Shown here: piece after piece, positions 168 to 24,346 of the stretch
Position numbering within the stretch: position 1 is the first letter of the stretch
Layout: every line of letters starts with the position of its first letter
Origin: Blastocystis sp. Blastoise
Lineage: Eukaryota > Protista > Bigyra: Opalinata
Reading direction: 5' to 3'
NCBI GenBank assembly: GCA_039096225.1
Contig: JBBPEB010000014.1
Coordinates: forward strand, 1,674,001-1,738,000
Length of the DNA: 64,000 nucleotides
Program-made: the position numbers and the translations under genes
Notes under the pieces: model-generated
Database searches by the model: none
The model's input: only the letters and a program-made list of their open reading frames with translations
Told to the model about the DNA's origin: nothing

Positions 168-4093
<3,926 letters not shown>

Positions 4094-8271: not shown

Positions 8272-15054
<6,783 letters not shown>

Positions 15055-18227: not shown

Positions 18228-20461
18228 TTAATGTTTATTTTTAAACCAGTAAGCGAATTTACCTTTAGACTTCTTCGAACTAACGGAAACAGTTGTTTGT
18301 TTTTCTTCTATAAAATGTTTTATATATACTATAATTTATATAAAATACTTTTTTTGGATATGGACTGTTTAGTATTTATAGTTGATGTTATTGATGATTT
18401 ATTTGTATCTTTTGTTAAATCAAGTGGTGCTATATTATTAGTATATGTATAATAATAATAATATAATAATATATATACAACTTGATAAATCTATAATTGA
18501 TTTTCTTTTTGATTGAACTTTTTTATTTTCTTCTTCTTTTATTACATCAAAAACTTGAATAGAAGACCTTTATATATATTATTATAAAGTTTTATCAAAT
18601 AATATATATAGAGTATTTTTATAGAATGATATTAAATAATATATACACAGAATTATTATAGAATGATATTAAATAAAATATATAAAGTATTATTATAAAT
18701 CTTATTAAATAATATATTAGAGTATTATTATAAACTGATATTAAATAAAATATATATATATACTTAGGTACACAAGTAAAAAAGCTATTTATTTTAGTTT
18801 GTGTTGTGAATGGTTTCATTTGTTGTTTCCATAAAGCAGGAAGAAGAGGAGATGTCACTTTATGTAATTCCTAGAGTATATATATATATACATATATGAC
18901 TTTAAAAACATTATAATAATAAGTATATCAGCTGAGAGTATATTAACAAGTATTATAACATCAAGAAAACATATTATTGTTATTTATAATATATATATAT
19001 ATATATATATACAAGATTAAAATCTATATAAATAGGTGCATGGTCACTTAGAGATGACGGAATAGACAAACGATCTGAAGAAACCAAATGAGGAAGAAGA
19101 AGAGGTGACATAAAAATATAATCAATTCTTAAACCACGATCAACATCTTGAAAATTTCGAGAAATATCCCAACATGTATATTTTGGTATATATGTGGATG
19201 AAACTTGAATTTGATTATTATTATTTATAATATTATTATCTTGATTAGTAGTAGATAATATAGAAGAATTTTGATTTATATTTATTGATTGCTGATTGTT
19301 TACTTCCTTTTCTGTTTTAGATGAATTATTATTATTATTATTATTATTATCTTGATTATTATCTTTTTTATCTTCATTATTATCTTCATTATTATCATCA
19401 TTATTATCTTTATTATCTTTCTTATCTTTATTATTACTATTATAACTAGCTATTCTTTTATCTGTAGTTGATTTATAATCATGTTTATGTAGATATAAAT
19501 AACTATCAATGTAGTCATTAGAATACTTCCTTAATATATTTAATTCTAAAGCAGTATAATACGAGCTTTTAGATCCATCAGGATTCTATATATATATACA
19601 ACTATTATTTTAAAAAAATAATTTATTATATATACATATAAACAATAATAATAAACATATATATACAGTTAATAAATAAGGATGAATATCATAATCTTCT
19701 GCAATATTAAAATCACCAACTAAAATAATCTTATTATCTATTTCTTTTTTATATTTCTCTACTAGATATATTTATAAATTTAATAATAATAATAATAATA
19801 TATATATATATATATATATAATACATTTTTCATATAAAGAATTTAAAAATGATAATTTATAATTTAATCGGCCGTTTTCAGGATCAATACCTTGAAAAGG
19901 AACATAACTATATATATATATATATGGTATTTATATAAAACTATATAAATAATAATAGATATACACAGAAATGACAGTAAATAATTTAAAACGAATAAGA
20001 ACAATTCTTCCTTCTTGATCATAAATAGTTTCTTCTATATTTATTTAATATTAAGATATATAATTATAGCAACACAATTATATACCAAAAAAATTATTTA
20101 TTGCATTTTCAATATCATAGCATGATTTTACATATATTCCTATTCCTGAATACCCTTTTTTCACTGAAATAAATAACCATTTACAACTAAAAGCAAATAA
20201 AAATAATATATACCTTTAGAGTAACTCCAAAATGAGTGATATCCTGATATCATTGCAATATCGTCAGTCAAATCTTGCTCTTGAATCTTTGCTTCCTATA
20301 TATATAAAGTGATTTCAAAACACATTTGTATATATATTTACTTGTATACAAAAGATATCTGCTTTACATGATTCCAAGAACTTTGTGATAGTTCCATAAG
20401 TTGTTTTCAAAGCAGAAACTGTTGGGCGCCACCCATTTACATTCCAACTAATTACTCTCAT
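18228..20461 (-). CDS. APEX2: AP endonuclease 2-like (ExoIII/EEP family) with PCNA PIP box, multi-exon
   Basis: MRVISWNVNG, DIFCIQE, KKGYSG, DQEGRIV, VGDFNI, YTCWD, GLRIDYIF, SDHAPI, PIP-box QTKINSFF; last exon ends KFAYWFKNKH-TAA. Confidence 0.88.
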
Positions 20462-20597: not shown

Positions 20598-20641
20598 ATA
20601 TCTGTCAAACGCGTATTGTTTTTTTCTCAAACGCGTATTTT
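20598..20641 (-). promoter_or_regulatory. 44-bp element with two ACGCGT (MluI/MCB-like) boxes upstream of APE2
   Basis: ATATCTGTCAAACGCGTATTGTTTTTTTCTCAAACGCGTATTTT; inverted copy with 1 mismatch at 23346-23389. The function is inferred. Confidence 0.6.
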
Positions 20642-23345
20642 CTCAAGATTATTTTCTAAAATAAAAGAATAACTGTGATATTTTTTTCTTAGCTATATAA
20701 CTTTTTATGTCAAGCTTCAGTGCTATTACACACAACATATGATTAAATATTTCATTAGTGCCTTATGAAGAAGAAAAATAAGAGTCAAATTGTATTCATT
20801 TCAAGGGTGTACTCTGTCAAACTTTGTTAGGTCATTCTGATTTCGTAAATACACATAGAGAATGAGTTCTGACATAATCTTGTCGACAAATAAGTCTTTG
20901 AAACTGTCTTCTAGGTCGTGATACTGAACTTCATATTCTTTGTTTGTTTTAATTTATTATGATTTACTTTCTACAGAGTACTTTAAATATATTGTAATGA
21001 CTTAAAAGCTAAATATATGAGATAAAATTTTGAATGGGTTGAAATCCCTATTATAAATAATCAGATTCTTCTCAAATTGATTTCAACTATTGTACTATGA
21101 TTAAATGATTGAACTAATTAATAAAATAAATAAAACAATAAATATATTTGTCATGTCATAATTCTCATTTTCAGGTTTCTGTCTTTTATTTCAGACAGTC
21201 ATATTTTTATTTTTAGGTTGCATATGACGTGAATATTTTTCATAATAATTTTTGTAGATTATAAAATATTTTATAATTATTAGAATTGTAAATGATTAAC
21301 TTCCAATATCATCAAACTAAAAATAATTATATTTTCTTGAGTACCAAATACTTTTGACTACAACAATAAGCAAAAAACATAAAAATTAGTTCTTCATAGT
21401 TTATTAACACTAAACAGAAAATTTGATTTATTATGGATTTGCAAGCGTCTAGTTTCACCAAATTGATTTATTTATAATTTTAATTTATAGTTATAAGATA
21501 TATGTTATGTGAACTTTAATATTATGTTAATAAATATCTTTTTAATATTTTCCTTATGGAGAAAAATAATCATTTTCAATTGACGTTAAAGTGTTTTTCT
21601 AAAAAAGGGTTGTTACACTTAGTGATAGTTCTTGATAATTATTGAATTAAAAACAAAAAAAATATATTCTTATATATTTAACACTCTCTTATATAAATAT
21701 TCAAATGATATTTTAAAAAACAAATAATTCTTACTGGTATAAAGAAAGCTGCTAAAAGAAAGAAAAAGCCAAAAAAAAAATGATTTTTTTCTGTTATTAA
21801 TTAATGTCAGGTTACCTATCTCTTCATGTAGATTGGGAACAGTTTATATATATTAAATTAGTACAATGTTAAGTATCTCTATTTAGTAAAATATAGATTT
21901 ATATATAAATATTTTAATATTTATTAACACAAAAGAAATTATATGTATATGGCTTTTTGAGTTTTTTACACTTTTTTCTTTTTTCCCATATTGAAAAATA
22001 GAAATTCAAAAGTATGTGCAGTTTCAAACTGTTTATATGCTTGCTATTACATTATGATAGTGAAAATTCTAGAATCAATACATTATGATACAACACAATG
22101 AAATGCATTTTTTTCATACTTTTTGACAATAAAGTAATATAAATTATAAATAAATTTCAGAATTTTAAATTATTTAAAAATGATAGATATTCGACTATAG
22201 TTGCAAAAAATATAATAAAGAGAAATAAACACATAAAGAAAACATATATATATTTGACATAATATACATTTTTTAAAAACTCGTTTTAGGGTATTGTTAT
22301 CATGCCCTTGAATCAATAAATATTTCATTAATTGTTTTCAAGGTTTATATATATAATATAGATTGATAGATGCATAATATACCAAAATTTCAATACTCTG
22401 TGACTTATTATTAACCGTCAAAATATCATAGTTAGTTAGTGTTTTTATGAAAAACAATAAAAAATGTAAAAAAAAATAAAATCCTCTTTTTGAAACACTA
22501 AATTTAATTTCAAATATTTTAATATAAATAATATAAATAAGCACGGCTTATATTTTATACATATATAAAAATAGAAACTAGTTAATCATTCTATGAACTT
22601 CAGTAATCAGGAATATTCATGGAGTAAAGGAATGAGTGTGAAATTTTTTGTTGTCTTTTTCATTATTCTTAATTTTTATTATATGTTTATACATAGATAT
22701 TATTTTATAAATAACTTGACATATTATTTCTTTAACTAATTTATTTTATGAGTAGGATTGTTAACTCAATATATAAAACTATAAAAAACAGTTGTTAATT
22801 GTGTGTCTAAAGGTAGTGTATTTCTTAATGTTAAGTGATTATTTTATCATTTATATTAGTCTTGATTTAGGGTTGATTATAATATCCAACAAATAATGAT
22901 TTTTAATGATAATAATATGAGAATTAGCACTAAATTATTGATAAGATATTACTAATTTTTAAGATAGATACGTTAACAATAATTGCAGACGATATAGACC
23001 TCATTTATGTTGTAATAGACTAATTTTGAAAGAACATTATTCAAGTGATACTTGCTCAAACTCATTTGAGTGAAAATTATTTGTATATTCTTGAAGATAA
23101 ACATATTCTTATATATTTTTTAGATTAACTCTTTTTAATAAGTCGCTCTTGTCATTAAAAAAGTTGGTACTATAAAATAAGACGAGCAACTTTGTGTACT
23201 GATTTTTCATTGTGTATTATGTGTATACACTTCATATTTATGAAGTAGTCTCTGATAGATTAGAAAAGAGTTTATGCAAAAAATTATTTAAAAAAAATAA
23301 ATATCAACTGAGTTCAACCAAAAACAAAATATACACAAAAACATA

Positions 23346-23389
23346 AAAATACGCGTTTGAGAAAAAAACGATACGCGTTTGACAGATAT
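23346..23389 (+). promoter_or_regulatory. 44-bp element with two ACGCGT boxes upstream of ASK1 (inverted partner of 20598-20641)
   Basis: AAAATACGCGTTTGAGAAAAAAACGATACGCGTTTGACAGATAT, 78 bp before the ATG. Confidence 0.6.
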
Positions 23390-23467
23390 TTTATTATTTC
23401 CATGAAAAATAGTTCGTATCTTCTATTTAAATTATATACATTTTTGTTTTCATTACAAGATCAATAA

Positions 23468-24346
23468 ATGACTACATGTATGTTTTGAATATATTATAAT
23501 TCAATTAAACTATAATTACCAAATAAAGATGAAGATGAATTGATCGATAACCAAATCACACTTTTATTACAGAAATCAGATGCTAATTTTGAGAAAGCAA
23601 CAGAAATAGCATATGATATCAAAAAGAGTGTTAAAAATCTTACGAGTAGTATGAAGGAAATTCATAAAGCTTCAAAGGTATACTATAATTCTATCTTTTA
23701 TTTTATATATCATATTTTTCTTGTAGATATGGGTAGATTTTTTTGACTCGTTCAGTACTGTGTCTACGTCTCAACTCGTAAACAATGTATTTTTTATCAT
23801 ATAATTTTTTTTTATTATATATTTTTTTATTATTATTATTATATTTATTATTATTAATTATAGTTATATTAATAATTATATATTATATTACTGTACTATT
23901 TTAATAGATAAAATAATATGAAATATAATTTCTATATAGTCAGATATATTACCAGTAAAACCATGTATTGGTGATGATAGTGATCCAAGTTTTTTAGCAA
24001 TATCTCCTCAATATAAAAATAAACAAGAATTACCTACATATATGGTAGATATTCCATTTACTCCTATTCTTCCACCCAAACTGAATCATAAAGAAATTAG
24101 TTCTAATTTAAAAACTCCAGAAGCTACACAACCAACTATTGATATTAAAAATGTATATATTATTATTAGTTTATATTTTATTATAAATGTTTATTATTAT
24201 TATTATAAATATTTATTATTATTATTATTATAAAACATTCTTTTATTTAGAATTCTCTATTATCATCTATTGACCATGATATGTCATCCTTAGATATTTC
24301 TCTTCTATCCGATATTCCTCAATATAAACCTGAGTCTGATATTTAA
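23468..24346 (+). CDS. ASK1: DASH/Dam1 kinetochore complex subunit Ask1, 5 exons
   Basis: Spliced ELIDNQITLLLQKSDANFEKATEI...IHKASK|IWVDFFDS matches the DASH_Ask1 pattern (EQ.ITL.LQ.ID.NF...FWK.FFE); C-terminal SP/TP sites. Confidence 0.8.

Follow-up and report, generated by a model that had tools for sequence, protein, structure and literature searches.

Paired ACGCGT cassettes between an APE2-like and an Ask1-like gene of Blastocystis as the probable ends of a non-autonomous piggyBac-like transposon

Why should the start codons of two divergent genes in a Blastocystis genome be faced by the same short cassette carrying two ACGCGT hexamers? The question arises in a 64,000-nt stretch of the tortoise-gut Blastocystis sp. 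'Blastoise' (C8:1674001-1738000 in our contig numbering, hereafter the window), in which two nearly identical 44-nt sequences stand inverted between an APE2-like gene and an Ask1-like gene. An initial annotation of this DNA had offered two readings, a promoter motif of a cell-cycle or DNA-maintenance regulon and the terminal inverted repeats (TIRs) of a decayed transposon. Our analysis indicates that the twin-ACGCGT cassette is, very probably, the 40-bp TIR together with the ATAT target-site duplication of a 2784-bp non-autonomous piggyBac-like cut-and-paste transposon, which lies in the 218-bp divergent promoter of the APE2-like and Ask1-like genes and whose family comprises 17 non-coding copies, two truncated copies and one autonomous copy on contig C23. 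Repeat structure, target-site duplications, identity among copies, and the homology and fold of the transposase supply the direct evidence for this answer.

The paired cassette and its distribution in the genome

The arms of the inverted repeat, 20598-20641 and 23346-23389, are 44 nt long, pair at 43 of 44 positions (98% complementary) and are separated by 2704 nt. Each arm holds two exact CAAACGCGTAT units at a period of 22 nt, and these four are the exact units at 20606 and 20628 on the plus strand and at 23349 and 23371 on the minus strand; with up to one mismatch allowed the window contains five matches against 0.31 expected, a number reached in none of 100 shuffles. The cassette as first described, inverted, identical at 43 of 44 positions and with two units in each copy, is borne out by these coordinates, and the spacer is indeed without a recognisable gene, since its largest open reading frame (ORF) is 68 aa and resembles translated AT-rich filler. 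No ORF longer than 68 aa was found between the arms, and Rfam and tRNA scans of the element returned no match and no sign of RNA-gene cargo. The tetranucleotide CGCG, which had been called very rare, is scarce in absolute terms but not depleted, the window holding 19 where base composition predicts 11.9. One near-match, TAAACGCGTAT, which departs from the 11-mer at a single position, lies at 9298-9308 on the minus strand in coding-like sequence without TIR context; as a candidate family member it was taken as a chance match in view of those surroundings.

A search of the genome (33.3 Mb in 34 contigs) found the twin cassette 38 times, as 18 inverted pairs spaced 2565-2779 nt apart and two solo ends, with none in a reversed control. 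The single 11-mer CAAACGCGTAT occurs 78 times, 76 of them inside cassettes and two elsewhere; with the unit thus all but confined to one repeat family, the cassette has no existence outside that family. Seventeen of the pairs are non-coding copies sharing one 2.7-kb interior at 98.7-100% identity, and these fall into two subfamilies of 11 copies (0-7 substitutions within) and six copies (0-8 within) with 28-37 substitutions (about 1.1%) between them. A second copy, about 233 kb away (C8:1927237-1930020, locus L036), has exactly the sequence of the window copy, which differs by 0-1 substitutions from four others. Flanking sequence is unrelated at every one of the 18 sites, which marks the insertions as independent. 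The window transposon was recently mobile. Two incomplete copies complete the set, one cut off by the start of contig C13 and one on contig C7 (C7:363026-363488; L034:2997-3459). What is left of the latter is a single intact TIR, flanked by ATAT, and 463 nt from the 3' part of the element at 99.6% identity; beyond these 463 nt the sequence is unrelated, with no second end in the 3.6 kb examined downstream. Three copies on C8, at C8:1694598, C8:1927233 and C8:2161070, are spaced by 232.6 and 233.8 kb, and two of the three are identical in sequence and opposite in orientation. Segmental duplication as the cause of this regular spacing was ruled out by their differing flanks, and it may reflect coincidence or local hopping.

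This distribution decides against the proposal that the cassette is a host cis-element resembling the MluI cell-cycle box (MCB) or E2F sites, selected at APE2 and ASK1 as part of a cell-cycle or DNA-maintenance regulon. The proposal had real attractions. Its start-codon distances are right, with 136 nt from 20598 to the ATG at 20461 and 78 nt from 23389 to the ATG at 23468, and exon and Pfam evidence upholds the naming of the flanking genes as APE2-like and Ask1-like, both of which have DNA or chromosome functions. Like fungal MCB/E2F sites, the cassette presents the ACGCGT hexamer, doubled, near start codons, here in matched orientation to the two genes. Unlike such sites, however, it is distributed as transposon ends: 76 of the 78 units are ends of one repeat family, every twin cassette terminates a member of this 2.6-2.8-kb family with target duplications, the 18 sites have unrelated flanks, and the genome-wide scan found the twin arrangement solely as family ends and never independently upstream of functionally related genes. 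The matching orientation to both genes follows from geometry, because a pair of TIRs sits in a divergent intergenic region. We therefore give the regulon almost no credence; it was a tempting false lead and is now removed, the motif belonging to transposon ends only.

Alignment of all copies, each taken with 2 kb of flank on either side, defined the element boundaries precisely. All 18 pairs have the junction form WTAW|CTGTCAAACGCG...CGCGTTTGACAG|WTAW, the two tetranucleotides of a pair being identical, and the 4-bp direct duplications, perfect in 18 of 18, are ATAT in 11 pairs, ATAA in four and TTAT in three, with no TTAA. Since TTAT...TTAT and ATAA...ATAA are direct and not inverted repeats, the outer four bases are the target duplication and not part of the TIR. 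The 44-bp repeat of the initial annotation accordingly divides into an outer ATAT, which is the target-site duplication, and a true TIR of 40 nt matching at 39 of 40 positions. The transposon interpretation as first phrased was right about the TIRs and about inverted pairs with target duplications, of which there are 18, all perfect; its description of the element as decayed does not hold, the 17 copies being 98.7-100% identical and one of them matching the window copy in every base, and the duplication is a perfect 4-bp WTAW and not TA. The reconstructed empty sites carry A at position -1 in 16 of 18 cases, then W, T (18/18), A (18/18) and W, followed by T at +1 in 17 of 18.

In the window the element therefore spans 20602-23385, 2784 bp at about 22% GC, with 40-bp TIRs (39/40) starting CTGT and an ATAT duplication; it is one of the 17 full copies with different flanks and is written here on the plus strand. 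The left duplication occupies 20598-20601 and the right 23386-23389 (neither is stranded), both assigned on the 18 paired copies with identical 4-bp direct repeats. The left TIR, which begins CTGTC, runs from 20602 to 20641 on the plus strand and matches at 97-100% the ends of the C23 copy that bears the transposase; the right TIR, 23346-23385 on the minus strand, differs from it only at position 16 (C for T), a T/C polymorphism inherited across the family. Each end opens with C (CTGT...) and contains a repeated unit twice, and the perfect TIR, 40 bp here and 52 bp in the autonomous copy, exceeds the 12-19 bp typical of piggyBac TIRs. Around each ACGCGT core the unit extends to 12 nt, TCAAACGCGTAT, an exact direct repeat with a 22-nt period within each TIR: the outer and inner units of the left TIR lie at 20605-20616 and 20627-20638 on the plus strand, and those of the right TIR at 23371-23382 (outer) and 23349-23360 (inner) on the minus strand. 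The outer TCAAACGCGTAT unit is a presumed transposase-binding site.

The autonomous copy and its transposase

The 18th pair, C23:364288-366860 (locus L047), encloses 2573 bp with the same ends and an unrelated 2.5-kb interior. Only the terminal 40-63 nt are common to this copy and the non-coding copies, and over 40 nt the ends are 97-100% identical. Its interior contains a plus-strand gene of three exons (L047:2146-2960, 3128-3441 and 3576-4042; 1596 in-frame nt) with two GT..AG introns, L047:2961-3127 and 3442-3575. The three-exon structure was read manually from open stretches and agrees in full with a public model, P0001, a 531-aa hypothetical protein that NCBI lists for Blastocystis sp. 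'Blastoise' as KAK8797550.1; exons were searched singly and P0001 served as the full protein. The window copy has the termini and the duplication type of this autonomous copy without a transposase of its own; it never encoded one, and is the non-autonomous partner of the single piggyBac-like autonomous copy. A 19-mer at C23:375906, 9 kb from the autonomous copy and with two mismatches, was considered as a further TIR and dropped, no 40-mer match being found there at up to 12 mismatches.

Exon 1 alone matches PF13843 (DDE_Tnp_1_7) with 24.3 bits against a cut-off of 22.4, and the C23 gene is the sole match to this family in the genome. Full-length P0001 reaches 28.3 bits against the same 22.4, and several of its relatives reach 41-50 bits. 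These relatives come from an exhaustive HMMER search with exon 1, which returned P0001 and 44 distant proteins, each at 27% identity or less. A word-index protein search with exon 1 returned no match, its length window leaving out full-length relatives. A phmmer search of the PDB with exon 1 gave no match; later profile and fold searches did. The profile, built from an alignment of 15 full-length members, matched piggyBac (6x67) at 1.1e-11 and piggyBat (9c0f) at 2.4e-10. D192, E193, D284 and D466 of P0001 are invariant among the 15 sequences, and the profile alignment places D192 on piggyBac D268 and D466 on D447; D284 is assigned as the equivalent of D346 solely by its position after a strand of the structural model. 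That model, an AlphaFold2 prediction (pLDDT 76.5, pTM 0.73), had 6x67_C as its top Foldseek match (9e-11, TM-score 0.52/0.57) followed by piggyBat 9c0f, with Tn5 trailing distantly. Between the second and third Asp the family profile also matches SAP domains, that of Ku70 at 1.1e-7 and also that of THO1, and several relatives score above the Pfam SAP threshold or close to it; the SAP-like segment of P0001 lies at about residues 385-425. A Cys-rich C-terminus was not found: P0001 ends 65 residues past D466 with a single Cys in this tail, and its relatives end alike.

The C23 protein groups with piggyBac in its sequence, its catalytic triad and its fold, as does the family in its 4-bp duplication. 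Because its target is not TTAA, we file the family as a variant piggyBac lineage and not as a canonical member. The likeness to the Trichoplusia ni piggyBac and other piggyBac-like elements (PBLEs) embraces the DDE_Tnp_1_7 core, the DDD triad (D268 and D447 aligned), the fold, the 4-bp duplication, a roughly 2.5-kb element with one transposase gene, and ends that start with C. Each end moreover pairs an outer with an inner motif, much as piggyBac has a 13-bp TIR and a 19-bp sub-terminal repeat (PMC5381638). The inner repeat of piggyBac contains TGCGT/ACGCA motifs bound by the transposase (PMC5861402), which recall the ACGCGT core of the Blastocystis element. In contrast to piggyBac, the TIR is 40-52 bp long against an average of 14 +/- 2, the transposase has no C-terminal Cys-rich domain, which in piggyBac reads TGCGT, the stretch from the second to the third Asp accommodates an inserted SAP-like module, and the gene carries two introns.

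Target choice, relatives and a model of movement

The clearest departure from piggyBac lies in the target. The Blastocystis duplications are WTAW within A-WTAW-T, with TTAA in none of 18, and the target rule here clearly differs from the near-exclusive TTAA of canonical piggyBac. TTAA is regarded as characteristic of the superfamily in general; among 157 piggyBac-like elements surveyed, just five, each single-copy, had other duplications, and these were ascribed to mutation (PMC5381638). In piggyBac, N440 contacts a base of the TTAA (PMC7351741). The aligned residue of P0001 is H459, at a position that varies in the clade; its lack of conservation could relate to the differing target rule, which we offer as a lead and not as a result.

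A piggyBac-type catalytic core acting away from TTAA has a parallel in the ciliate proteins PiggyMac and Tpb2. In Paramecium the excision cuts are staggered by 4 nt around a central TA that does not vary, the geometry seen here with TA in 18 of 18. PiggyMac and Tpb2 are, in contrast, TIR-less host genes serving programmed elimination (PMC6143343, PMC3861120), whereas the Blastocystis gene lies inside a TIR-bounded, duplicated mobile element.

A few distant relatives of the C23 transposase, those with accessible DNA, provide a second view of the ends. L054 (protein P0007) reads ATAT|CTGTAGA...TCTACAG|ATAT, and CG-rich motifs lie a little inward from its ends. L056 (P0025) reads ATAT|CTGTT...|ATAT and has a 47-nt TIR (L056:66-112 and 1888-1934) with two GGATCC palindromes in each arm. 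L055 (P0020) has CTCTGG...CCAGAG ends with ATTT on either side. The closest relative, L052 (P0002, 26% identity), is bounded by CTGTG...CACAG, with TTTACGCGTTTT twice at the left end and once at the right. No convincing TIRs were found for L053 (P0005) and L057 (P0019) within their short contigs. Tips of the CTGT type, 4-bp duplications of A and T other than TTAA, and two palindromic hexamers per end thus recur across a deep clade. ACGCGT is the paired end hexamer in two members, and such pairs of palindromes may characterise the ends throughout the clade. On its metagenomic contig the P0020 gene (L055:3988-5863) adjoins genes with reverse-transcriptase and RNase H matches, a transposon-rich setting.

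The same body of evidence bears on the possibility that the family belongs to another cut-and-paste superfamily, Tc1/mariner with its TA target or PIF/Harbinger with TWA, and carries the C23 gene as cargo unrelated to it. In favour of this, the central TA does not vary among the 18 sites, and CAGT- or CTGT-like termini are found in Tc1-type elements. A 2-bp TA duplication would, however, leave mismatched tips in seven of 18 copies where the 4-bp direct repeat fits all 18; Pfam, profile and fold all mark the sole gene found between such ends as piggyBac-like, and relatives of that gene are flanked by the same kind of ends. We consider membership of another superfamily highly improbable, only marginally less so than the regulon.

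Several points nevertheless weigh against assigning the window element to a piggyBac-like system with its own target rule. Exons 2 and 3 alone had no Pfam match, and the SAP-like stretch of P0001 is not significant by itself, emerging only through the family profile and alignment. The absence of TTAA among 18 duplications is not significant alone, TTAA making up about 9% of the WTAW tetramers in the window and about 1.7 cases being expected. Among the relatives, the L052 flanks AAAT and AATT match imperfectly where the contig stops, and the palindromic ATAT of L054 and L056 could, taken alone, be read as part of the TIR; it is the Blastocystis family, and not these two, that makes the duplication reading secure. 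The probable link between the transposase and the non-coding copies is drawn only from shared ends and from its being the single candidate. Neither a transposition event, an excision site nor an empty allele was observed in the one assembly and the contig-level runs available.

Considering the piggyBac-like assignment as a whole, we propose the following model of movement. The C23 transposase would bind the two 12-nt TCAAACGCGTAT units at each end, cut at the CTGT termini and integrate with a 4-nt stagger at A-WTAW-T sites, leaving WTAW duplications, and would presumably move the 2784-bp non-coding copies in trans. By analogy with piggyBac, the chemistry may involve assembly on both ends, hairpin intermediates and seamless excision (PMC7351741, PMC5861402), with the TCAAACGCGTAT pair in the role of the terminal and sub-terminal repeats. 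Since the Cys-rich domain is missing, the SAP-like insert or the N-terminal region would be the part that reads the TCAAACGCGTAT units. One intact transposase gene alongside copies without a single difference suggests that the system may be active now.

As a class, the window element is an ordinary non-autonomous DNA transposon, notable as a non-TTAA variant. Like non-autonomous elements of the MITE type (miniature transposable elements with inverted repeats), it shares only its termini with its partner, has a non-coding interior, and outnumbers the autonomous form by 17 copies to one at high identity. Unlike them, at 2784 bp it is longer than its 2573-bp partner, and it is no miniature deletion derivative; its interior is unrelated to that of the partner.

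The 18 perfect WTAW duplications, together with the ATAT and ATTT of the relatives, argue for a naturally occurring lineage whose target rule and end-binding module are both different. We judge the chances evenly divided that this is a distinct and currently active piggyBac-like lineage, present in a tortoise Blastocystis and in metagenomes, which is characterised by a SAP insert, the lack of a Cys-rich domain, CTGT ends with paired palindromic hexamers, and an A-WTAW-T target that is typically ATAT. Because piggyBac is prized for strict TTAA targeting and seamless excision, such a lineage would, if real, offer a natural template for retargeting piggyBac vectors, as well as a home-grown transposon tool for Blastocystis, an organism with very few genetic tools so far. 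The genome paper on the Russian-tortoise isolate Rus-B gives bulk transposon and repeat percentages only (PMC10690189). An incomplete literature library, with Repbase and Dfam outside the search, yielded nothing relevant on non-TTAA lineages, SAP-bearing piggyBac transposases or piggyBac in Blastocystis.

The flanking genes and the Ask1-like promoter

The insertion separated start codons that had previously lain 218 nt from each other, made up of 140 nt to the left of the insertion point, the target ATAT counted in, and 78 nt to its right. The first coding exon of the ExoIII/APE2-like gene lies at 20341-20461 on the minus strand, with its ATG at 20461 and a typical ExoIII/APE N-terminus, and a later exon at 19013-19585 has a weak Exo_endo_phos match (E 0.003). 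On the plus strand, the first two exons of the Ask1-like (DASH) gene occupy 23468-23675, with the ATG at 23468 and a 51-nt intron at 23478-23528; exon 2 scores 20.1 bits for PF08655 (DASH_Ask1) against a cut-off of 20.7. Contigs of run X1, one of three runs of a single study available as contigs only, show gaps of 46-51 nt with GT..AG borders (20034-20341 and 23477-23725), so that both flanking genes are spliced; the RNA status of the run is a guess, and transcript starts and strand are not readable from it. In this run the APE2-like contig extends to 20535, which leaves 66 nt before the element, and the Ask1-like contig has its first base at 23384, within the last 2 nt of the element. Transposon DNA therefore now adjoins the Ask1-like transcript on its upstream side. 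By moving two divergent genes 2.8 kb apart, the insertion amounts to a small natural experiment in promoter disruption.

These positions bear on a further idea, raised in the initial annotation and compatible with the transposon reading, that the inserted TIR now serves as the core promoter or start region of the Ask1-like gene. Only 82 nt, duplication included, separate the element from the Ask1-like ATG, and the spliced, RNA-type contig that begins 2 nt inside it indicates a gene still expressed and spliced. Elsewhere in the genome many copies lie 20-270 nt from open frames, several with the frames pointing away, and no long open frame was found interrupted by any copy, both by a rough measure. 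Such proximity to 5' ends is, however, also expected from selection against insertions into exons, the original 82 nt may suffice as a promoter in a compact genome, and the APE2-like contig ends 66 nt before the element; nor can Logan contigs, from a run only guessed to be RNA, show transcript starts or strand. Exaptation of the TIR is accordingly an idea we regard as unlikely, if clearly less so than either the regulon or another superfamily.

Within the transposon itself, low-depth exact contigs of run X1 lie at 22574-22838 and 22987-23178; they could stem from DNA carry-over or from a low level of transcription of one or several among the 17 copies. The peaks in depth at 22337-22497 and 23303-23463 are low-complexity matches of 90-95% likeness and were set aside as signs of expression. 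The tortoise isolate Rus-B has a 33.3-Mb genome with 23.1% GC and longer introns (PMC10690189), and the 46-51-nt introns at this locus fit the longer, variable introns of tortoise Blastocystis, as against the fixed 30 nt of human subtypes.

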